64,000 nucleotides of DNA from Oculina patagonica. Taxonomy: Eukaryota. The stretch is from the NCBI RefSeq assembly GCF_052425735.1, contig NC_135763.1:3162001-3226000 (forward strand), in the 5' to 3' direction. Positions 3,001 to 15,772 of the stretch are shown here, in pieces; position 1 is the first letter of the stretch, and each line of letters starts with the position of its first letter. Position numbers and translations under genes: made by a program. Under the pieces are notes generated by a model. It ran no database searches and was not told the origin of the DNA. It worked only from the letters and a program-made list of their open reading frames with translations.

Positions 3001-5978
3001 CAGAAGACTGCAGCAGAAAGCAGTATTGGGAACTTGACATATCCCAAGTACAGAAAGACTGACTTGAATCATCCAAACCCTTTAACGCTATCTCAAAGTG
3101 AATTAATCGTTCGGCGGAGAGAAACTGAGAAAGAGAACAGGCTATAATGAAATAAATTGCATGTTAGGCACTAATAAAACCCTATATTGCTTTTTTGCAG
3201 TGCTTGTCAAACATCTGGACTGGCCTGGTGAGTTTAAATAAGTTTTTCTGTACTTACAAACTAACACCCCCAAAAATAAAGGTACATGCATGATTTAGGT
3301 GAAAAAGATCCGTGCTATTGAAGTAAAAGAAACGTGATTTCTGTATAAAAGAAGCGTGATTTGAGTGCAAAAGAAGCTTGATTTTGTGCAAAAGAAGCGT
3401 GATTTGAGTGCAAAAGAAGCTTGATTTTGTGCAAAAGAAGCGTGACTTGGGTGCAAAAGAAGCTGATTTGGGTGTAAAAAAAAGCGTGATTTCAGGGTAA
3501 AAGAAGCGTGATTTGGGTGTAGAAAAAGCGTGATTTGGGTGTAAAAGAAGCGTGATTTGGGTGTAAAAGAAGCGTAATTTGGGTGTAAACGAAGCGTGAT
3601 TTCAGGGTTAAAGAAGCGTGATTTCAGGGTAAAAGAAGCGTGATTTGGTTGTAGAAGAAGCGTGATTTGGGTGTAAAAGAGGCGTGATTTGGGTGTAAAA
3701 GGAGCGTGATTTGGGTGTAAAAGAAGCGTGATTTGGGTGCAAAAGAAGCGTGATTTCAGGGTAAAAAGAAGCGTGATTTGGGTGTAAAAGAAGCGTGGTT
3801 TTGATGTAAAAGAAGCGTGATTTGGGTGCAAAAGAAGCGTGGTTTTGATGTAAAAGAAGCGTGATTTGGGTGTAAAAGAAGCGTGGTTTTGATGTAAAAG
3901 AAGCGTGATTTGGGTGTAAAAGAAGCGTGGTTTTGTGTATGAGAAGAGTGATTTGGGTGTAAAAGAAGCGTGGTTTTGTGTATGAGAAGAGTGATTTGGG
4001 TGTAAAAGAAGCGTGGTTTTGATGTAAAAGAAGCGTGATTTGGGTGCAAAAGAAGCGTGGTTTGGGTGTAAAAGAAGCGTGATTTGGGTGTAAAAGAAGA
4101 GTGATTTGGGTGTAAAAGAAACGTGGTTTGGGTGTAAAAGAAGCGTGATTTGGGTGTAAAAGAAGAGTGATTTGGGTGTAAAAGAAGCGTGATTTGGGTG
4201 TAAACGAAGCGTGATTTCAGGGTTAAAGAAGCGTGATTTCAGGGTAAAAGAAGAGTGATTTGGTTGTAGAAGAAGCGTGATTTGGTTGTTATTTGAAATT
4301 GCATTCTCACAGCGGGAATGCAAAAAAAAGCAGCCGACAAACGGTCTCCATATCCTCCGTGTTACGTTACCTACGACGTCAATTTAGGCAAAAACGTGAT
4401 ATTTTTGTTGTAAGCAAATCAGTGCTGTTATTAAACCCACAATTCCAACATTTTGTTTTTACTCAAAGTTGGTGGTCGATGGTAAAGCATCTTTGTTGGT
4501 CTCTGCTGGGAATAGCTGAATTGGATCCTTTGGACTCAGTTGACAGTCCTTCAGTGACACTTGTCCACTTTCTTTATGGAGCTTTCCTTGTCATGGGAGT
4601 CATTCTGCTCGTCAACATGATGATAGCACTACTCTCTAACACATACCAACGAGTTGAGGTATGACACCTCACTTTTAGTGCCAATCTAATAAGTATAAGA
4701 TAAAATTTATGATTATTTAGATGGGACCGTCAAAAAAATGATGTCTGTCTCAAAGTTACGATCTTCTCCGGGGGAAGGGACTCCCATATGAATGTACGGA
4801 GATGCTCTGCGACTCGCTTAGGAGTTTAAATTTCGGGGTTTTAGTCTCACTTAGGATGTTCTGGGAAGAACGCCAATATTTTTAGCCGTCAAAATTTCGT
4901 TTAGGGTTGCACGCGAAGAAATACACAAAATAATATCAATTCAATATCTTTAGTATTTTGGTATCTTTCACGGATCAAAAAAGCTTGAGCCACGCCCAGA
5001 TTGGTCTGTTTTGGGTTTCTTTTTAAAATTTCAGACGAGCATCCCCGCCCCTTTCATATGGGAGATCCCCTCCGGGGATCTTCTACGAACATAATAACTC
5101 CCTCCATATTACAAAGTTAATGCATGTTATCATTTAGGTAAACCAATATGTGATGTAATATACTTTAAATTGTTAAAGACCTTTTTACTCAAGCCAAGTG
5201 TTTGTACCAACGGAACCCGAGTATTTGACTTTTCAACTCATAAGCTGTAGCAGGAAATACTGTAGACAACATTAGGTCACCCACACTCGAACATAATGAC
5301 TATCTTAAGGACTAAAATCATCTTGTTTTGTACATTTTCGTCTCTTTTTTCTGAAGGACAATGCTTTGAAAGAATGGTCGTACAAGAAAGCCATCACGAT
5401 CCAAACATACAGTACTTATCACCCAATACCGGTGCCTCTTAACCTGATATCAAACTTATTTTTATGCATTCGGTGGCTTTGGTGGATGTGTAAAACTTGT
5501 TGCAAGGCCGGACACCCACTGAGGAACACGACTTGGAAGAGAAACGAACGAGTAAGTAGTGTTCCCTAGTTGAGAAATAAGTGGCTCTGGGGACACATGA
5601 TTTGATTGGCTTGATTTTTTTAACAAAAAGAATATATCGTCTAGCCAATCAAATTGGCTAGACTTTAATTCCCTTTGTTGAAGATCTAACCAATCGAATC
5701 ATGTGTCCTCAAAGCCACTTGTTTCTCGTGCCCCAGGCTCTGCTGGGTAAGAGGGACATGCAACTCTGGAAACGAGAATAGCTTACTGGAACAAAAATCT
5801 GACATTAGGTTAAACACGTGGTTAAACAATGCTTGAAAGGTTTCGGTTAGCTTGTTCCTTTAAGCGAACCTATAGCTCGGTAGATGGAACGAAACCATCG
5901 GAGATCAGATCTAGAAACCAATATAAACAATCCACCTGAATACTCTTGGAACGTTCATTTTGCGATCTAACATCGGTT

Positions 5979-6036
<58 letters not shown>

Positions 6037-9000
6037 TAGTGGTAACCAAAGGTTAGAAAGTGTGGGCCTTGACGCACTTAGAAATGGTACTGGTACGAGA
6101 GTACGTAATTTTAGATGGCAGTGTCAATAAATAAATGATTAAATGGACAAAAGACAATTATCCCGAGTAACGCGTCACGCAAGGAATGCATGTTGTTATC
6201 GTTTTGGGAAGTGTAATCGAGCACGCAGTGTGAATTGAGATGTGATTTTTCTCAGTCGGTTAACTCGCTATGTTGTGCTCGCCTTTTATTAACGTGGCGC
6301 GATTAATAATAAATCACGCTTAATTGCCGCTAACCGGCCGCGAACCAGTCAGAGTTGTTTTTTGTCGGATTGACAGTTTGGTGAACTGTAGTCTTGATTT
6401 TCCTCGGTCGATAAACTCGCTATGTTGTCAGTGTTATAACGAATTTCTCGAGAATAACCGTTGTTGGAATCATTCACTTTGCCGTGGTTTATGCGTGATA
6501 CAATCAGAGCAAATTTTCGCAAAAGCAACACCCGTAAAACAAGTCTGCAAATTGTAATGTTTGCAATCTTCCATGTGACAGAAGCCTAGATCTTATGTGA
6601 CAATCGTTCATGGAGAACAGATTTTCTCTTCCGGTGTTACGACAAACTGTCGTGATTGACACATTTTTCGCATTCCGATCGTTCTTAGTGGAAGAACAAA
6701 ATTTTCAACTTCTGTTTTCTGTTCGCCCTTTATTAACGTGGCGCGCACGCGTAAAACGCAATCCGCTGGTCACTGTCAAGATTAGGGTTGCGGGCCTCTC
6801 TTGGGCCCGCAATAAATCAGGTAAAGGAATTTCAGTGAGTAGACAAGATTGCAAATTTTTATGTATTTACTTTTGTACAAGAACAATAGCTAATATCTGA
6901 AATTTTTAAGCCATCGTGCAATTTGCATCATCATTGGAAACGTCCTTTCGTCAGATATGTTCGTTACTTAACAGTGAGATAAACATTTTCAGACTACTGA
7001 TTATTATAGCTTTGTTGATTTCCAACAACCACTATTGTGTCCACTTTTCTAAACTGTCTCATGATTTCCTTTACTGCTCGTCGAACCTCTTTGATCTTCC
7101 AGCAGAAAAGAACTGGATTCAGTGAAGAATTAAGGTAAACTAGGGCAAATGCCCATCCCTGAGCTAATAAAACAGACGAGGTAAAGCCTCGAACAGCCGT
7201 TAGTACCATTACTACAGAAGAAGGAAGATAACATGCTACTAGTGTAAGGTGAACCCACAATGCATTGTGAACAGTCTTCTTGTATCGTTCCATGTTTAGT
7301 CCAGAGCTTGCAGTCAGTCCAAGAGGAGAACTTCGTAGTTGTATTTGCCGCTGACGTCGAATTGTGAGAAAAATTCTTGAATAAGAATAAGTTGAAATTA
7401 GAAGCGGAAGTAGATTGATTGTACATACACCGGAAATGATAAGGTATGGATTCATGTCCGAAACGTACGTGAGAACGCCTGTCACGCTGGTTGAAAGCCA
7501 AAAAAGGACGACAACCGCACGAACTCGCTTAACGGTTACAACTTGTCTATATCTTAACCTCAATAATAGAGCGAGAAGCCTGTCCACGCTTATTGCGGTC
7601 AGTGTCAGTAGAGATACGCAAGAAAATATCGTGTTGAAGACGTACATCAATATTTTGGCCATTCGACAAAGATCCCAACTTGCAAATAAAGCTGAGAAAA
7701 TAAAAATAACACATAGTGGTAGTCCGATTATGCCAACACAGAGATCGGTGACAGCCAGAGTGCGAAGCAATATTTTTGATGGAAGATGAAGAGATGTGTC
7801 CTTATGAAGGGCGGCTAGGATCAAGCTGTTCCCAAGAGTAGCTGTTATTGTTAGAGAAATGTATACAGGCACAAGTAGTTTGAAAGCGAACAGAAGGCCA
7901 CTGCCTTGATCGTTATCGCCATCAGAAACAGTACAAAACAGAAATCGGCGAAGAGCTTCTTTTCTGCTTTCATCGCTGAAGTTTGACATCTTTCCATGCA
8001 GAAATTGCTCCAGTGGACTTGTTATAAGGCAAGTCAGATGTATTATGTCGCTTAGTTTCTGAAGTTATCGATCGATGCAGTTTTTTGTCCTGAATGCTGG
8101 TAAAGCGATTAAATAAATTAGGTTGATGCCTGCATCTGGCCGCTGTGGGTTTTTGCGAGCATAGCTTTCTTTTTATTTTATTTGGTAAGTGTTCCTTTGT
8201 ACACGGATGTTTTATGTGATTGGTTTGATATGACATGGACGCTGTTAATGTTATATAGTTAAATCCTTTTCTGCTGAGTACCATTACTTAAAAGAAACAG
8301 AAACACCCACTTCAATTTACGTTTTGGTCATTGAAATGCTTTCGCAATGGCCATGTTAATTTTTTCAGTCGGAACGTCATTGTAGAAGACCACTTTTCCT
8401 TATTCTATGTTCATAATATCTACAGCTTAAAAAAAAACATTGAACATATCTCATGCTCCTGATTCTTGCTCCTGAAAAATTATACAAATATCATGCGTAA
8501 GCTGAAAAAGAAAATATTTGACAACCGCAAATGTAAACGTGTCCGCTGTCATACGCTAAACGTCTCAGTGTGTTAACAATCAGGCTGGACATTTCATCCT
8601 CTCAAGTCAGGACATATCATTCATTAAACACCCGCTGCAATTTAACTTATTGGCACCAATATCTCCTGCGCTCTATTCTTGCGTATGAAATGCTCAGTGA
8701 AGCTGAAAAGAAATTGTTTGAGAACCGGAAAAACATAAACGTGCTCGCTGACATCCGGTAATCGTCTGTTTTAACTAGAAATTTTATCCTTTCAAGTTGA
8801 CATATCAGCCATTAAACACCCGATGCAATTTAACGTTTTGGCACCAATGAAATGATTTTTACTAATGGTCATGTCAAGTTTTAAGTGGGTATACATTTCC
8901 TGCAGTAAGTGCAGAGGTTCTTTTTAATATCGAAAGTCTTGTCTGATTTGGTGTCAGCTGAATGTATAGTGGTATTCTGTACATTCACGAATTTTGCTTC

Positions 9001-11046
9001 CTGAACAAATAATCAAATTACTTTACGGCTGACAAGAGTGATTTGAGTTTAAGAGAATATTTTACACCTGCAACAATTGCTAATGTGCTGACTTTTATCC
9101 GCTAAAGGATACTAAAATGACAGTATTTGGATATGTGATCAGTTGAATTTAAAACGTTCATTAATAGTTAATTTCTCTTTTTGTTTTCTTGCCAGGGCAA
9201 ATCGCTGGACGCTGTAGTTGAAAATCTTCAACTGACGTACTTTGCAAAGTATGGCTACTCATTTCCTCTCACAGGTAAAATAATCTAGTACGCAAATTTA
9301 TTAGCTTTTTGGGCCTAAAAACATTTCATGACATTTCATGACTCTTCTACTTTATCGAAAATTCCAACTTTTTACCCACTAGATAAGAGAATTGGTAAAT
9401 TCAGTTCGCGAATTTTGAACTAGGTCTAGAATTTTGAAAACAACTCTTTTCAGACTACTTCATGGAATTTGTTTGTGCAAAGTCTCTGTGAGAAATTTCT
9501 CCACTTCTTTTCTTTGCAGATGAAAGAAAGATGGACCATGTTCTTCAAGAAACTGAGAGAAACCGACAGATGGCCAATCAGATTGCTCACAGAACATTTA
9601 CCACACATGGGTTTGATGACGGTGCCTTTCCTACTGGTCCGAAGGTTTCAACTAGATTTCTATGCTGCAACATAACTTTTTTTGTCATCGCTACGTTAGT
9701 TTTTTTAGCTTTAGTTAGCGGAAGTCCTTTTTCCCGCGCCTTATTCTTTTGCCGCTCACTTGAACTAATAAGTTCCGTGCTCATGACGTGCGCGTAAAAA
9801 TTCAAAACCCAGCGACACCCAATCACACAGATCTCTTTAAAACTACGTCATCATGATCAGTATGGAATTTTCGGGTCCAGTCTCTTACTTCTCTCCAGCG
9901 GGAAAAGGACATTCTCGTCCTCAGGGCAGCATGTCCCTCTTGGCTTAAGAGCCAATAACTAAAATCAACCAATTAGAAAGCTTCACTGCCAGTCCAATAT
10001 TTTTCATAGCATTATACCGGGTAAAGTTTTCATTACTCTTTTGTGATCATAAAGTCAAGGAAGCTAGGCACCTTGCTTGAAGATTATCGTCCCTCGTCTT
10101 TTCAGAAGAAAACCACACTGCACGCGATTGGTAGTGTGAAGACATGTGGGAGGAGACAAGGAGGCAAGCGTGGCCGAGTGGGTTGGGGCGCTGGTGTTGT
10201 AATCCGGAGGTCCCCGGTTCAGACCTGCCCTGGCCACTAGCTGGATTTGTTTCTCGGTTATCCCGAGTTCAAATCCCGACCACGCTTTGTATATAGCCAA
10301 CTGTCTGCCCCTGCCAGTTGATTTTCCTTTTTTCATTTAATATTTGTTTCCTCTGTTTCAGTGGAGCCTGTAACAGCTATCCGTAGAGATAGAAGCTAAG
10401 TGCATGACCACTATAAACACCATTTATTATTTATTATTATTATTATGTGGTGGACATTCTCCCAGAACGGCTCTTGTGTTATGTTGATAAGTATGTATCT
10501 TTCTTCTCTTACATCCTGGACCACTTTAGCTACACTAATAGAAACTTCTTTTTACTGATCAGGCCTGGCAAAGCCAAGGAATAAGAATCGAAGGATGTCT
10601 TTTGATTTGCGAAGGAAGCGAGTGCTGTTCCACATGTAAAGATGACCCGTCTGATAATCATGGGGCAAGATATCTGTTTCCTTTCTCTCCAGAAACTCCT
10701 CATTTTGAGGTAGGTATTCTATTTAAGTGAAATAAACAAACAAACAGTATTTTTAGGATTTGTGCTCAGAAGTCGAGCAGGCCGTTGTTTGCAAGCTATT
10801 GAATTCAGTTCTTTAAAACAAAGAAAAATATCATCGCTCGTTTAAGCCATAGAAGCTGTCTGGAAATCGTGAAAAGAATATAAAAATGTTAGACTTTTGT
10901 GATGTTTGATTTACGGTAGCCTTTTCTTCTTTGGTGAATAACGACCTTTACCATAAGCCATTTTTTCTGGGGGCGTTGTGCTGGTAATGGGTGCATTTTG
11001 ATAGTCAGTGATAATGTTGATGTTGAGGGATAAGTACTGCTGCTGT

Positions 11047-11077
<31 letters not shown>

Positions 11078-14000
11078 TCTCTGGCGACTATACAATGACG
11101 ACGATGCTGACGCTGACACTGTTGCTGGTAGAAGTGGAAAATTGAAGGGTTTTATAGTCGATAACTTTTCATAAGATTACATGACTAATTTCACGTGCCC
11201 TTGTTTGTACTAGTCATTTTGATAATTTTCAAATAAAAACTTACTGCCCTCCCTACAAATAGGTTCTAATTCAAGAAACAGGAGAGCGGCGGTTTTTAGG
11301 TGTGGGTGTTGTTGGGAAGAATTATGGCAATCACGCCATGCCAGGCTGGCTGGATGGGACCGTGGGATACCACATTGATGATGGCAAAATATTCATTAAC
11401 TCCCCGGATGGAAACGAGTACGACGGTAAGGACCTCTTTGTCCCAATCCATGAAAAGATGTATATAGAGGATATGACACGGCGGCGCGAAGATATGAATT
11501 TTTTTTTGAGTGGTAAAACAATATNNNNNNNNNNNNNNNNNNNNNNNNNNNNNNNNNNNNNNNNNNNNNNNNNNNNNNNNNNNNNNNNNNNNNNNNNNNN
11601 NNNNNNNNNNNNNNNNNNNNNNNNNNNNNNNNNNNNNNNNNNNNNNNNNNNNNNNNNNNNNNNNNNNNNNNNNNNNNNNNNNNNNNNNNNNNNNNNNNNN
11701 NNNNNNNNNNNNNNNNNNNNNNNNNNNNNNNNNNCATCGGTATATCCAAACACCGAGAAGAGAGTTGAAAATACGACGCGACGGGGACTATTTTTGACGA
11801 ATTCGGGTGTTTGGTGGCCGTGACCTGTCTCGGCTTTTTATATCTTCTAGATCGAAACAAAAACTACGGAGTAAACGGAGAACTAAAATCGTGAAAATCT
11901 ATGCTAATTTAGACCGGGTATCCAAACCTCCTTCACGGTTATGATTTCCTGTGTTTTGATTTGATGAATTATTTATGAGTTTGAGAAGGCAATGCAAGGC
12001 TTTTCTTATCTCACCACTCATTTCATAATTCCTTAGATGCTATGGCATACAGAGGAGATGTAATTGGTTGTACTGTCAAGTTTGAATTGGCATCAAATGG
12101 CAAGATTCCAGTGGTTTTCTCTTTAAATGGAAGACAGATCACTCAGGACGAGATACTTATGGAATACACTCCAAATGAGAAATCACTGTTCCCTTACATA
12201 GCCATGGGACACGTGGGAATCAGAGTGTTGGCCAAGGTAAGTGTATTTTATATTTTAATACAAACACGGACAGTTGGGTAAGGACAATATTGGCACACCA
12301 CCCATTATCAGAACTGCGTGACTGTCAGACAGAGAGCGTAAAACCAATAAGGGTTTTTATCCAATTTAATTCAGGAGAGAGTAAAGGTCCCGGCGACAGG
12401 TTGCTGCGACATGCCGCCTAGTGTGACATGGGACAAACTATATCGCTGTGTCAAAATTTTGTCGCCGCGACCTGTCGCACGAATTCAAACTGGTTTGAAT
12501 TTGTGCGACACATCGCAGCGACAAAATGAGCGATAGCAGCGTTGTCACAGCGTGTGTACACGTCTGCGACAAGTCGCTGCGACAAAATATGAATTAACCA
12601 ATGAGGGCGCGTCATGTATTTTCGCCATATTGAATATAGAAAACTACTTCGCATTCCCACTCTTCCAAATTCTCTGTTTGTGCACCAAACAAACACCTTG
12701 TCGCAGCGACTTGTTTGTAAGCAGTACACACGGAGCGACTTGTCGCAGCGACCTGTCTCTGCGACTTGTCGTATAGTGGGTTCCGACCTTAAATGTTTCA
12801 CGAAAGACACTTGACAATTTGAAAATATCAGAGAATATTTCAATTATTAATTAACAGCTGCCTGAAGACTGCACTTGATCAAACAGTCTAGCAGGGTTAC
12901 CACAGCTCAGGAAATGTTCATTCAAAGAAAAAATAAAATTATTGAAGGTCTCGAATTCACCATTCGTCACCCTGAAAGTTGACATTTTGAAGAAAAGTCA
13001 GGGAAAATTGAAATTATAATGCCTTTGATTAAATATCATTCGCCTGTGGCTGGAAGAATCATTTTAGGTAAATGTGTTTACAAGTCAAGTCAAACTTTTT
13101 TCAGGCAGGGGGGGGGGGGGGGCCCAATCAGCACTTGGCTGGTATCAAAAAGGGCCCTGCGTTAACTATGACTACATAATAAAAATAATAAATAAAATAT
13201 GTACACGGACGAAAACGGATGAAAAAGAAAACGGATGAAAAAGAGCGCTTAAAAAACACAAATGAATCATAATTCAGCGTTGTTTTCCTTTTGGAAGCAG
13301 AGGCTGGAGGCCGCTACTATATCTGACCTTTTGATTTCCTTTGGCGAGGAAAGTTTTATTTTTATTAGGGAAAAGTCAAGGAATTTTGAAATGTTTGAAT
13401 AATTGTAGCAACCTTATCTGGGTTGAACACATGATAAAATCCAAAATTTGTTTTCTTTCTAATCCCAGATGCGATCCAACGACACGTACCATGTTCAGCC
13501 GACAACTACAAGAAAGAACGAACAGGCAATGGAAAGAGAACTTATCATGACAATCTTAGATAAAATTAATAACTTTAAAACAGAAACAGAAAAACAGGTC
13601 GAAGAAACTAACGAAGTCATAAGAAGTGCGGAGTTTGGGCTCCATCACTCACAATCCAGCCGCCGACGTTTATTTAATCGGCTAAAATACGGTTTTGAAA
13701 GCGTTAAGGACTTGTTTCGATGGGCAATAGAGGTGGACGAACGAAGGATGCACAGTCCTCGCTTAACGAGAAGAAATTTGAAGGATCTTTGCACCAAAGA
13801 TGAGATGGATCACAAAGAACAGTGGCCTACTAACACCGAACTGTTGACAAAAATAAGTAATAAATTGGCAGAGATTGAAGAATACACGGCTGAGATGAGC
13901 GGCACATTCCTTAAAAGACTGGAATGTTTGAAGACGGATATGAAGAATAATTGCGATGGGTTAAAAGACATGGGCACTTACGTTGAGAAAGAGTTCCGCG

Positions 14001-15149
14001 AAGTTACAGATTTGATAAAACAACATTGTAAAATGCATAAAGACAACGAATTCAAAGAAGACTAAAAGTTTCAGATAAAGGAGGTTTTTTTGCAGAAAAT
14101 TTCGTGTTCAGTTTTAACTTTTTAATGTGACACTCGGCTATATAAACAAAAGTAAACTGACTGATCCAAGAGTTGTAAAATGATTTAACATGTTTATTGT
14201 GAACAAAACATTCATAAATCAACAGTAGACAATATTTGTCGTTTTTCGCCTATCGACTTTCATTGGTGCAATGCAAAAAAAATTTCCACGTATTTTCGAG
14301 AAAACAATTAAATACATAAGATTGTGTAAATTCAAACTCTGCGCGCATGCATTCAATAGTATGATAAACAATTTTAATAAATGAGAAAAATTCACTGAGT
14401 CGCCGTTTTCAGTTCTTTGCGCTACTTAGTGCTGAACGATAAAGACAATAGCGTGTTTACGTATGTCTTGGGCATAATTAAGAAATTTTACAAAAAAAAT
14501 GTTTCCTTTCTTATCTCAGATGCGATCCAATGACACGCCCCATGTTCCGTCATTAACAGCAGGACAAGACGAACGTCAAAGGGAACGAGAACTGATCATG
14601 AAGATCCTGGAGGAAATTAAGAAGTTCAAACTAGAAACGCATAAACAGGTGGAAAAATCCGAAAAACTTATGGAAAGTACAGAATGGCAGCTTATGTCCA
14701 CAGCGTCTAGCCGCCGATGGTTACAGGAGAAGCTAGCAAGAGGTTTTGAGAGTATTAGGGACTTGTTTCGAAGATCATTACGAGCGGACGAACAGAGGAT
14801 GAGCAGTCCAGCCTTAGCTAAAGCAAACTTGATGTCACTGATCGAGAAAGATGAGAGTTACAACAAAGGACACTGGCCTACTAACACGGAATTGTTGACA
14901 AAAATAAGCGATGAACTGGCAGAGATTGGAAAATACACAGCCGACACGAGTGGTGAATTCCTTGAAAGAATGGAAAGTTTGAAGACGGATGCAGAGAAAC
15001 TAAGAAATGGGTTAAACGACATGGACAGTTATGTCGAGAAAGAGTTCAGCGAAGTAAAAGAATTGATTCGAAAGAACTGCACGAAATACAAAGAAGAAGA
15101 AGACGAAGAAGACAAATTCCTGGCCAGCATTGGGGTAATCAGAACATAA
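1..15149 (+). CDS. Multi-exon gene (5'-partial): TRPC-like transient receptor potential cation channel with an N-terminal vWA-like domain, a C-terminal SPRY domain and alternative coiled-coil last exons
   Basis: Hand-spliced exons, all GT-AG and phase-consistent: <2-226, 466-694, 1450-1473, 1643-1979, 2564-2914, 3201-3227, 4469-4658, 5357-5551, 9196-9274, 9520-9644, 10563-10709, 11263-11425, 12037-12236, then 13469-14065 OR 14520-15149 (about 960-975 aa visible). TRPC-like motifs: S1 TTPYFVFLRDTLSYLALL, S3 SDRWNILD, S4-S5 linker VGPIQIALFHIIGDV, pore LCWSLLG (cf. LFW), S6 LLVNMMIALLSNTYQRV, TRP box EWSYKKA (cf. EWKFAR) followed by PIPVPLNLI. Confidence 0.88.
2..694 (+). CDS. vWA-like domain exons of the TRP gene (2-226, 466-694)
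   Basis: Spliced product contains ...DRQHAEKVLIFFTDHK...GIKLVPVGIGSHINIRELERI, matching the vWA pattern R..A.KV.I..TDG...GI.I.AVGIG.....EL..I. Donors AAG|gttggt (226) and CACG|gtaagt (694); acceptor gtcag|GTC (466). Confidence 0.75.
722..1089 (-). mobile_element. 5'-truncated LINE (CR1/L2-like) 3' end in a TRP intron
   Basis: ORF 811-1089 (MYKTVNGLAPDYL...YNLR...RSFSYRGAILWNNMP) is the typical C-terminus of CR1/L2-type RT ORF2; short 3'UTR, AATAAA and (TTACA)n tail at about 722-745. Confidence 0.8.
1643..5551 (+). CDS. TRP transmembrane core S1-S6 and TRP box (exons 1643-1979, 2564-2914, 3201-3227, 4469-4658, 5357-5551)
   Basis: Hydrophobic helices plus WNILD, GPIQI, LCWSLLG, NMMIALLSNTY, EWSYKKA and PIPVPLNLI motifs in the correct order and frame. 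Confidence 0.9.
3294..4290. repeat. About 1-kb minisatellite, 22-bp unit AAAAGAAGCGTGATTTGGGTGT, about 45 copies
   Basis: Directly visible tandem array with variant units (GATTTCAGGGT, GGTTTTGATGT); it explains the ORFs at 3295-4323 and 3756-4049. Confidence 0.95.
4768..5078. mobile_element. MITE with CCGGGG...CCCATATGAA terminal inverted repeats
   Basis: ccgggggaagggactcccatatgaa at the left end and ttcatatgggagatcccctccgggg at the right end. Confidence 0.6.
5982..6035. repeat. (AAT)n microsatellite
   Basis: About 17 AAT units. Confidence 0.95.
6994..7989 (-). CDS. Intronless class A (rhodopsin-family) GPCR, melanocortin/adenosine-receptor-like orphan, nested in TRP intron 5552-9195
   Basis: 331 aa with 7 hydrophobic segments; GN (TM1), LAVTD (TM2), ISVDRL (DRY variant), CYLP (TM6), NSSLNPVLF (NPxxY variant), helix 8 KEVRRAVK. 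Confidence 0.9.
   Translation of the reverse strand: MSNFSDESRKEALRRFLFCTVSDGDNDQGSGLLFAFKLLVPVYISLTITATLGNSLILAALHKDTSLHLPSKILLRTLAVTDLCVGIIGLPLCVIFIFSALFASWDLCRMAKILMYVFNTIFSCVSLLTLTAISVDRLLALLLRLRYRQVVTVKRVRAVVVLFWLSTSVTGVLTYVSDMNPYLIISGVCTINLLPLLISTYSYSRIFLTIRRQRQIQLRSSPLGLTASSGLNMERYKKTVHNALWVHLTLVACYLPSSVVMVLTAVRGFTSSVLLAQGWAFALVYLNSSLNPVLFCWKIKEVRRAVKEIMRQFRKVDTIVVVGNQQSYNNQ
10160..10446 (+). mobile_element. tRNA-derived SINE, family 1
   Basis: A box (TGGCCGAGTGG), B-box-like (GGTTCAGACC), conserved body ccactagctggatttgtttctcgg, (TTA)n tail; other copies at 59390-59576 and 62955-63122. Confidence 0.8.
10563..12236 (+). CDS. SPRY domain exons (RanBPM/SPRYD3-type) of the TRP gene (10563-10709, 11263-11425, 12037-12236)
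   Basis: PHFEVLIQETG..FLGVGVV...MPGWLDGTVGYHIDDGKIF...GDVIGC...VVFSLNG...LFPYIAM reproduces the SPRY signature YFEV..G.IG..PGW...GYH.DDG..F..GDVIGCG...FFT.NG...LYP.VG. Confidence 0.88.
11038..11125. repeat. (CTG)n/(GAC)n low-complexity microsatellite in a TRP intron
   Basis: Visible trinucleotide runs. Confidence 0.85.
11525..11734. other. Assembly gap (210 N) inside an intronic repeat
   Basis: Run of N. The flanking exons (ending 11425, starting 12037) join in phase within the SPRY domain, so probably no exon is lost. Confidence 0.95.
12383..12792. mobile_element. MITE-like element with internal TGTCGC/GCGACA repeats
   Basis: Ends aaggtc... and ...gacctta; many palindromic tgtcgc/gcgaca motifs inside. 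Confidence 0.6.
13469..14065 (+). CDS. Alternative terminal exon A (198 aa, predicted coiled-coil) of the TRP gene
   Basis: Phase-0 acceptor ttctttctaatcccag|ATG matches the phase-0 donor at 12236; open to TAA; AATAAA at about 14376, upstream of the next acceptor. Confidence 0.75.
   Translation: MRSNDTYHVQPTTTRKNEQAMERELIMTILDKINNFKTETEKQVEETNEVIRSAEFGLHHSQSSRRRLFNRLKYGFESVKDLFRWAIEVDERRMHSPRLTRRNLKDLCTKDEMDHKEQWPTNTELLTKISNKLAEIEEYTAEMSGTFLKRLECLKTDMKNNCDGLKDMGTYVEKEFREVTDLIKQHCKMHKDNEFKED
14520..15149 (+). CDS. Alternative terminal exon B (209 aa), paralogous to exon A
   Basis: Phase-0 acceptor tttcttatctcag|ATG; same MRSNDT start; shared blocks RELIM, GFES..DLFR, WPTNTELLTKIS, YVEKEF; intact ORF. 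Confidence 0.75.
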   Translation: MRSNDTPHVPSLTAGQDERQRERELIMKILEEIKKFKLETHKQVEKSEKLMESTEWQLMSTASSRRWLQEKLARGFESIRDLFRRSLRADEQRMSSPALAKANLMSLIEKDESYNKGHWPTNTELLTKISDELAEIGKYTADTSGEFLERMESLKTDAEKLRNGLNDMDSYVEKEFSEVKELIRKNCTKYKEEEDEEDKFLASIGVIRT

Positions 15150-15234
15150 AAAAATAGCGAGCTTTTTAAATATTTTATTAGTGTTTGTATTTAAGGTTAA
15201 CTGTTACTGTTTCTTGTAAATACTAAGTACGTAT

Positions 15235-15772
15235 ATAGCATGATAAATTTTGCATTAACTGAAAAACTCGAAAAAAAAAATCCGAGTTCCAAATGGGATT
15301 TTAACCCACGACCCTCCGTGATCTTGTCGGATGCTCTACCAAAAGTACCACCGAGCTACTGGAGACTCTATGGCGAGCAAGGGTGAAATGTGGGTCTTGA
15401 CTAGAACCGCATCACGCAGTCACATAGTCAAATCAGTACAAGTACACATATGACTCATAACTGCATCGCGCAGTCACATTAAAGCATACCTGAGATGCAA
15501 ACCATCGAGCCGCCCAAGTGAGTCGTTATGTAGAAATATAGCATGAAAAATTTTGCATTAGCTGAAAAACTCGGAAAAAATTCCGAGTTCCAGATGGGAT
15601 TTGAACCCACGACCCTCCGACCCTCCAGTAGCTCAGTGGTAGAGCATCCGACTAGATCACGGAGGGTCGTGGGTTCAAATCCCATCTGGAACTCGGAATT
15701 TTTTTCCGAGTTTTTCAGTTAATGCAAAATTTATCATGCTATATTTATACATAACGACTCACTTGGGCGGCT
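15235..15772. mobile_element. tRNA-head-containing retroelement arranged as tandem plus inverted copies (fold-back)
   Basis: 15235-15365 is partly repeated at 15535-15620 and inverted at 15624-15772; the tRNA-like segment 15624-15691 has A box TAGCTCAGTGG and B box GGTTCAAATCC. Confidence 0.75.

Follow-up and report, generated by a model that had tools for sequence, protein, structure and literature searches.

The window analysed here, a 64,000-nt stretch of DNA (G000:C6:3162001-3226000), contains a gene, referred to below as gene 3, whose last two coding exons are very likely tandemly duplicated alternative 3'-terminal exons of a single TRPC-like channel gene with a SPRY domain and a helical tail. 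Splicing of the donor at 12236 to the proximal acceptor at 13469 would give tail A, with its own stop codon and an AATAAA 311 nt further on. Splicing of the same donor to the distal acceptor at 14520, skipping 13469, would give tail B. The most likely mechanism behind this choice is a competition that would set the distal 3' splice site against the proximal one, which has a poly(A) signal downstream of it. All positions given below are those of the window, and all exons described lie on its + strand.

The coding part of last exon A occupies positions 13469-14065 (198 codons plus TAA) and that of last exon B, read from its acceptor, positions 14520-15149 (209 codons plus TAA, with FLASIGVIRT at the C-terminus). 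A preliminary description of this DNA, made from its letters, had placed stop-free ORFs of 198 and 209 aa, each at a phase-0 acceptor, at exactly these coordinates. It had further judged the two ORFs by eye to be colinear, about half identical and essentially without indels, and BLASTP agreed with this (102 of 187 residues identical, or 55%, 72% positives, 0 gaps, E 1e-68), a likeness well above what chance would give. Tails A and B thus differ at 45% of their positions. A pyrimidine tract and cag stand ahead of each exon, and both start with cag|ATGCGATCCAA(C/T).

Both exons can be joined in frame to the same upstream exon. The cag|ATG acceptors at 13469 and 14520 are both of phase 0, and exon 12037-12236 closes on a complete codon (AAG|gtaagt), which makes the donor at 12236 a phase-0 donor that is common to both acceptors. 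It is because exon 12037-12236 finishes on a whole codon that both acceptors fit phase 0, and the earlier statement that both exons match the donor at 12236 is therefore correct. The duplicated unit can still be detected in the DNA, where positions 13443-14016 and 14494-15067 share 72% nucleotide identity over 574 nt. This unit takes in 26 nt of the 3' splice region, with its pyrimidine tract and AG. The 3' splice region of exon A (13443-13468, pyrimidine tract and cag) is kept in the neighbouring paralog gene 2 and in the related sequences L016, L029 and L030, and for the 3' splice region of exon B (14494-14519) gene 2 agrees at every one of the last 28 nt. Since both exons end in a stop codon (TAA) and exon A is without a downstream donor, any given protein has either tail A or tail B. 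The adjacent A and B exons are homologous, with one upstream donor and one phase, which is the arrangement of tandem-duplicated alternative last exons.

To follow the joints in RNA, we aligned contigs of three presumed RNA runs (X1, X2 and X3) and the raw reads of X22, a small poly(A) read set, over positions 9500-15499. X1 and X2 come from two studies, carry the label "organism A" and are ∼2% diverged from the window, and X3, labelled "organism B", is nearly identical to the window and is the run closest to it. The two junctions that had been predicted from the letters, 12236 to 13469 and 12236 to 14520, were both present in spliced contigs of X1 and X2. Specifically, joint 12236>13469 (GT..AG) was covered at a depth of 27 in X1 and 38 in X2, and joint 12236>14520 (GT..AG) at a depth of 61 in X1, 77 in X2 and 42 in X3. 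The ratio of A to B joints was therefore roughly 1:2 in X1 and X2, with A accounting for about one third of the joints in both studies. As the contigs are 97.5-98% identical to the window and the exons of the neighbouring paralog just 86-90%, the contigs derive from the ortholog of this gene.

The presence of cDNA in these runs is evident from the spliced contigs, with contig 3 of X1 joining 10563-10707, 11261-11424 and 12036-12236. Upstream GT..AG joints were found at 9644>10563 (X1 and X3), at 10709>11263 (X1, X2 and X3) and at 11425>12037 (X1, X2 and X3, and one raw read of X22). The overhang into the upstream exon is just 22 nt, except for the B joint in X3, where it is 38 nt. The 22-nt overhang ends precisely on the exon border, with GT..AG, and its sequence does not resemble the genomic 22 nt ahead of exon A. 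An overhang of 22 nt is the length expected where de Bruijn assembly stops at a branch point.

Tail B is the major form; the minor form, tail A, is on record from two studies, both on a very closely related species. In X3 only the B joint was found and the A joint was absent, which limits the A joint to organism A; exon A is covered ∼3x in X3, by a contig (13350-13868) that extends into the intron. X22 had no reads on exon A, and its reads fell on exon B only (14700-15099, + strand). The alternative choice of a last exon, as put forward in the preliminary description, is borne out by the observation of two joints instead of the single one that would have spoken against it, the A joint being seen only in the species that is ∼2% diverged.

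These RNA data also bear on a different reading, according to which B is the sole functional last exon and exon A of this copy is a decaying duplicate with an acceptor that is used at a low, non-functional level. This would fit the restriction of X3 and X22 to exon B, and B having about twice the depth of A even in X1 and X2. It fits poorly with an A joint that makes up such a share of the joints in two independent studies. Further evidence on this question comes from the paralogs and relatives of the two exons, and from the selection that acts on them.

A single B-like tail is present in gene 1, ∼42 kb upstream of gene 3. In gene 2, ∼10 kb upstream, an A-type exon (A2, 81% at the aa level to A) is accompanied by a B-type exon (B2, 76% to B), the latter fused in frame to a further partial copy so that an ORF of 379 aa results. 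In a paralog on contig C2, one tail is intact and three further copies are decayed, and a single tail is found in other species, as it is in gene 1. The Logan contig L016, from a relative with 87% nucleotide identity, contains exon A, a spacer of ∼700 nt and the start of exon B. A whole B ortholog with 90% nucleotide identity is present in L026, from the sister sample, and two further samples have intact A-type exons with the same acceptor. Orthologs and paralogs of exon A comprise P0009, P0010 and P0011 as well as A2. In a maximum-likelihood tree the A-type exons formed a clade (96/94 support) with three other samples, and the B-type exons were placed near the base of the ingroup. The occurrence of A and B types in both gene 2 and the relative, together with the A-type clade, indicates that the A/B split is older than the duplication that separated gene 2 from gene 3 and older than at least one speciation. 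Judged from the genomic sequences, tail-exon duplication recurs in the coral TRPC-SPRY family, with A and B in gene 3, A, B and an in-frame second B in gene 2, and extra copies in the C2 paralog.

We next consider selection on the tails. Pairwise codon-model comparisons gave an omega of 0.37-0.52 in nine of the 14 pairs (A3-A2, A2-Ao, B3-Bo, A3-B3, A2-B2, Ao-Bo, T1-B3, P1-B3 and P15-A3), with LRT p-values of 5e-5 to 0.03. The other five pairs were not significantly below 1 (A3-Ao 0.73, B3-B2 0.77, B2-Bo 0.87, and two pairs involving P16). In three-taxon estimates, branch omega was 0.40 for B3 (bootstrap 0.18-0.83) and lay at 0.2-0.45 on most of the A-type branches. For A3, the window's own copy of exon A, the terminal branch had an omega of 0.7-1.1, with an interval that includes 1, and is indistinguishable from neutral. 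The tail exons of genes 2 and 3 are 86-90% identical with indels that are only in-frame, and the alignable intron is 74-84% identical and heavily gapped. Taken across both clades, these values (omega ∼0.3-0.5) point to a purifying selection on both exon types that is real but weak. Weak constraint is usual for exposed helical tails. The earlier suggestion of selection on both exons is supported, though weakly, for the two types, with an omega of 0.3-0.5 and intact exons in gene 2, gene 3 and the relatives; for the window's own A branch omega is not distinguishable from 1, and some of the B pairs are not significantly below 1.

The omega of 0.7-1.1 on the window's A branch would fit a decaying exon A, and decayed extra tail copies do exist in the C2 paralog. 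The single-tail genes, moreover, carry B-type tails with the FLASIGVI end. Set against this, the ORF, the acceptor and the AATAAA of exon A are intact both here and in gene 2, and A-type exons are intact in three other samples, with a branch omega of 0.2-0.45. By a rough estimate (t = 1.38 per codon), an exon free of constraint should have gathered ∼12 stop codons after A and B split. We consider it quite unlikely that exon A is such a remnant, and favour the reading in which A and B are both alternative last exons.

An AATAAA near 14376, ahead of the acceptor of exon B, had been noted before, and it was found at 14376-14381, past the stop codon of exon A. The likely 3' UTR of exon A spans 14066-14400 and is crossed by RNA contigs: the X2 contig halts at 14337, and the X1 exon-A contig spans the entire A-B spacer up to 14519. 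The 335-nt 3' flank of exon A is 85% identical to the corresponding flank in gene 2, with the AATAAA aligned. For exon B, the start of the 3' UTR is at 15150-15262; the X3 contig tracks the window up to 15262, and the X1 and X2 contigs diverge after 15161. No AATAAA was found near the end of exon B, the nearest signal being an ATTAAA at +329. The position of the AATAAA and its alignment in gene 2 suggest that exon A may use its own poly(A) site.

Alternatively, transcripts with exon A might read through to the poly(A) site of exon B, in which case exon B would serve as 3' UTR and isoform A would result from a choice between 3' splice sites. Contig 5 of X1, in which the 12236 overhang is continuous with exon A and with the full spacer as far as 14519, could be taken to reflect such a transcript, and the A flank in the relative's contig L016 is without an aligned AATAAA. 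A contig is not a single molecule, however, and coverage of the spacer could stem from pre-mRNA; in X2, moreover, the contig ends well within the spacer. Genes 2 and 3 also share the AATAAA, and their 335-nt flanks are conserved above the level of the introns. We regard read-through as unlikely, though it is the least unlikely of the alternatives considered here, and tentatively prefer the use of a separate 3' end for exon A. The protein would be identical whether isoform A uses its own poly(A) site or reads through.

The tails probably belong to a gene whose N-terminal exons fall at or before the start of the window. Upstream coding blocks were located by searching with translated segments from a distant paralog and from two further species. 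For the TM exon (2553-2915) and the pore exon (4452-4661), the matches in PDB were solely TRPC3/4/5/6 and TRPgamma chains; they were colinear, with E-values of 1e-4 to 7e-3 that are weak because single exons served as queries. The conserved part of the pore/S6 exon, 4452-4661, had TRPC3/6/4 as its only PDB sequence matches, at pore-S6 positions. It ends with ...NTYQRVE|gt in phase 0 and is kept in the paralogs and in other species. The next exon, 5357-5551, reads DNALKEWSYKKA...PIPVPLNLI and has an acceptor ag|GAC and a donor CGA|gtaagt, with phase 0 at both ends. This exon (...LKEWSYKKA...PIPVPLNLI), in phase directly after the pore exon, contains what we take to be the TRP box (EWKFAR-like), and its frame is kept in the C2 paralog, L019 and L027.

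Further downstream, a small conserved exon (9196-9274) has an acceptor ag|GGC and ends in phase 1, fitting the next exon. The 3.6-kb intron ahead of it holds an antisense GPCR ORF. Exon 9520-9644 has phase 1 at its 5' end and phase 0 at its 3' end, leading to joint 9644>10563. An ATG-starting frame of this exon was rejected, as conservation shows frame 3 to be the real one. Three SPRY-region exons follow. The first (10563-10709) is conserved and is spliced by joint 10709>11263 to the second (11263-11425), for which a phmmer search against PDB returned SPRY domain-containing protein 3 (SPRYD3; E 2.7e-7) and the SPRY domains of RanBP9/10. Joint 11425>12037 leads to the third (12037-12236), which carries the shared phase-0 donor AAG|gtaagt at 12236|12237. 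A run of N at 11526-11735 falls within an intron.

The exons 4452-4661, 5357-5551, 9196-9274 and 9520-9644 and the exon that starts at 10563 have GT-AG borders and matching phases throughout. The SPRY exons would be linked to the pore exons by the joints 4661>5357, 5551>9196 and 9274>9520, which we infer from these borders and phases. The order of an N-terminal block, a VWA-like block, TM, pore, small exons, three SPRY exons and tail recurs at six loci, namely three tandem paralogs on the contig, the paralog on contig C2, a contig from a coral genome in ENA and a scaffold from a TARA coral metagenome. The linkage from pore to SPRY is backed by the recurrence of this same gene order at six loci. 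These observations support the view that the tails probably form the end of a TRPC-like channel that carries a SPRY domain.

Searches for complete proteins returned little beyond short ORFs. No annotated or transcript-derived full-length protein with such a tail was found in full-library phmmer and word-index searches, and the searches with the tails returned only stand-alone ORF calls of ∼150-240 aa on genomic or short contigs. With the TRP-box exon as a query, just genomic ORFs running into the intron were obtained, and no spliced-contig ORFs across 5551>9196. A literature search for the combination of TRP, SPRY and VWA gave nothing relevant.

One could thus imagine that the two ORFs are independent single-exon genes, or that SPRY and tail form a gene that is separate from the channel. 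Both ORFs begin with an ATG exactly at the acceptor, the protein databases hold just stand-alone ORF calls of ∼200 aa, and the three connections from the pore exon to exon 9520 are predicted from exon borders and phases. However, both ORFs are spliced to 12236. The A exon of gene 2 begins with cag|TTG and not with ATG, from which it follows that the ATG at the acceptor is an internal Met codon and not a start. Consistent with this, no homolog with an upstream start was found in any species examined. The stand-alone ORFs in the databases are genomic calls that include intron read-through, and on the side of the channel the phase runs unbroken from the pore exon onwards and six loci keep the order of the blocks. 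Separate genes are therefore a very improbable explanation, and the preliminary description was right not to regard the two ORFs as independent single-exon transcripts. We return below to the reading of A and B as alternative ends of one channel.

TRP channels carry C-terminal coiled-coil helices, as seen in the CH2 helix of TRPC channels and in the coiled coils of TRPM and TRPA1. To obtain a view of the tails of gene 3, AlphaFold models were made for both with a 22-sequence alignment (mean pLDDT 75, helices 84-94). In these models a helix at residues 13-84 is followed by a low-confidence stretch at ∼85-121 and by a second helix at residues 122-196 in A or 122-203 in B. Both tails thus have one predicted shape, with two helices of ∼70 residues and a disordered linker of ∼37 residues. 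The heptad register is constant over approximately residues 141-190, and the coiled-coil character that had been ascribed to the tails is in agreement with this register and with the long modelled helices. Compared segment by segment, A and B are 50% identical in helix 1, 46% in the linker and 62% in helix 2, and thirteen positions are fixed differently between the A and B types. The B-type tails, including those of the single-tail genes of other species, end in an acidic run followed by FLASIGVI(RT), and the A-type tails stop before it. This C-terminal motif of B is kept in P0012, P0013, P0014, P0017, P0001 and gene 1.

Searches for known domains or folds gave no specific match. For both tails and for the single exons, Pfam returned only sub-threshold helical-bundle noise (Vta1, COG6_N, Syntaxin_2). 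A Foldseek search of the tail B model against PDB had no hit at E<=0.001, and only generic long coiled coils were listed (Rad50 hook, SMC arms, V-ATPase stalks). An ESM Atlas feature search with the tails was uninformative (scores <=0.83). A complex prediction with four copies of tail B (residues 13-209), which was run without an alignment, gave a score of 0.00 and a pLDDT of ∼40, values that speak neither for an association of the tails nor against it.

In the models the tails resemble the C-terminal coiled coils of TRP channels in that they would be long, presumably cytosolic helices with heptad periodicity that follow a TRPC-like core and its TRP box. Unlike the TRPC CH2 helix or the TRPM and TRPA1 coiled coils, they have a SPRY domain between the TRP box and the tail and form a two-helix unit with a disordered linker, for which no sequence or fold match to those helices was found. 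A common scaffold with a different surface and a C-terminal motif that is present or absent could alter subunit assembly, partners or trafficking. A more far-reaching idea is that the helical hairpin tail is a subunit-recognition code, such that the A and B isoforms form distinct channel populations or bind different partners, with the FLASIGVI end as an anchoring or trafficking signal. We regard this as speculative and improbable in its full form.

Homologous alternative 3' exons that arose by tandem exon duplication are a well-described class (PMC9741552). Among 236 human tandem exon duplication events, 77 swap C-termini, and these events are enriched for coiled coils and disordered tails (PMC9741552). 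The tropomyosin genes TPM1, Tm1 and lev-11 have three tandem 3' exons (PMC9741552). The pair described here is like the C-terminal swaps of the tropomyosin type in having adjacent homologous exons with a shared donor and phase and stops of their own, and isoforms that differ only in a homologous C-terminus. It is unlike the human events, which are mostly ancient, in that the A/B pair is young, fast-evolving (omega 0.3-0.5) and lineage-restricted, and in that its host is an anthozoan-type TRPC-like channel. An anthozoan-specific expansion of TRPC homologs is described elsewhere (bioRxiv 10.1101/2023.09.14.557824), and the presence of a TRPC-like core in multiple tandem paralogs of an anthozoan-type genome, as seen here, appears to be in line with it. 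SPRY or helical tails and alternative last exons are not described in the passages of that work that were consulted.

The class of mechanism is thus already known, and what is new is this instance in a coral TRPC-like channel, which represents real but ordinary alternative splicing. This kind of event is common in animals, so that the finding is useful and unsurprising. It provides a verified example, from a non-bilaterian animal and from an ion-channel family with an expansion in anthozoans, of how proteins diversify when a last exon is duplicated in tandem. The gene model is fixed as well, at a place where annotation pipelines could miss exon A or call the tails orphan ORFs, as public protein collections do. 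Should assembly or trafficking be under the control of the tails, the pair of natural isoforms, along with the single- and double-tail paralogs, would constitute a ready comparison set.

RNA contigs that cover the TRPC-like channel gene of the window reach depths in the hundreds to thousands and show numerous loose ends at 10150-10300, 11700-12000, 12500-13000 and 15270-15700, that is, in introns and 3' of last exon B (14520-15149). These high-depth stretches are dispersed repeats, some of which are tRNA-like or SINE-like. Loose read ends were also found at 11735, which is the edge of a run of Ns (11526-11735) in the intron that separates SPRY exons 2 and 3. In the intron preceding the pore exon (4452-4661), a long tandem repeat (3295-4323) reads on the minus strand as a repetitive ORF of 342 aa; similar repeats occupy the same position in gene 2, the tandem paralog upstream of the window, and in the TARA scaffold L027. 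An intact GPCR-like ORF of 331 aa, consisting of a single exon (6994-7989, minus strand), is located antisense within the 3.6-kb intron that separates the TRP-box exon (5357-5551) from exon 9196.

The 3' UTR of exon B differs structurally between the two organism labels of the RNA runs within window positions 15161-15262. Specifically, the exon B contigs of organism A (runs X1/X2) diverge from the window past 15161, with approximately 300-350 unlike letters, whereas the exon B contig of organism B (run X3) matches the window through 15262.

A homologous tail exon, P0001, was retrieved from another coral (ENA ERZ25067872, ctg20603). Within the 10 kb upstream of it, no SPRY exons were found, and ORFs are densely packed there (L017:1-7705), with Pfam matches to Collagen, Pox_A32 and Phospholip_A2_4. 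This ORF block may derive from a virus that has integrated here or from a Polinton-like element.

Additional tail copies were observed within the channel family. The B-type last exon of gene 2, located ∼8 kb upstream of the window (L002:1471-2611, G000:C6:3153403-3154540), is a single ORF of 379 aa, in which a B-type tail (residues 1-185) continues in frame into a second copy beginning at approximately residue 20. This fused exon would be expected to yield a four-helix tail. The distant paralog on contig C2 (L007-L009 and L021-L025, G000:C2:28630927-28666870) has the domain order VWA-TRPC-SPRY-tail in common with the window gene, and possesses one intact tail with the acceptor tag|ATGCGTCCC. 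Three further tail copies, all truncated or frameshifted, whose C-terminal halves are near-identical, lie 7-13 kb downstream. The presence of an intact tail alongside three damaged copies in this paralog indicates that tail-exon duplication recurs in the family, and that some of the copies decay.
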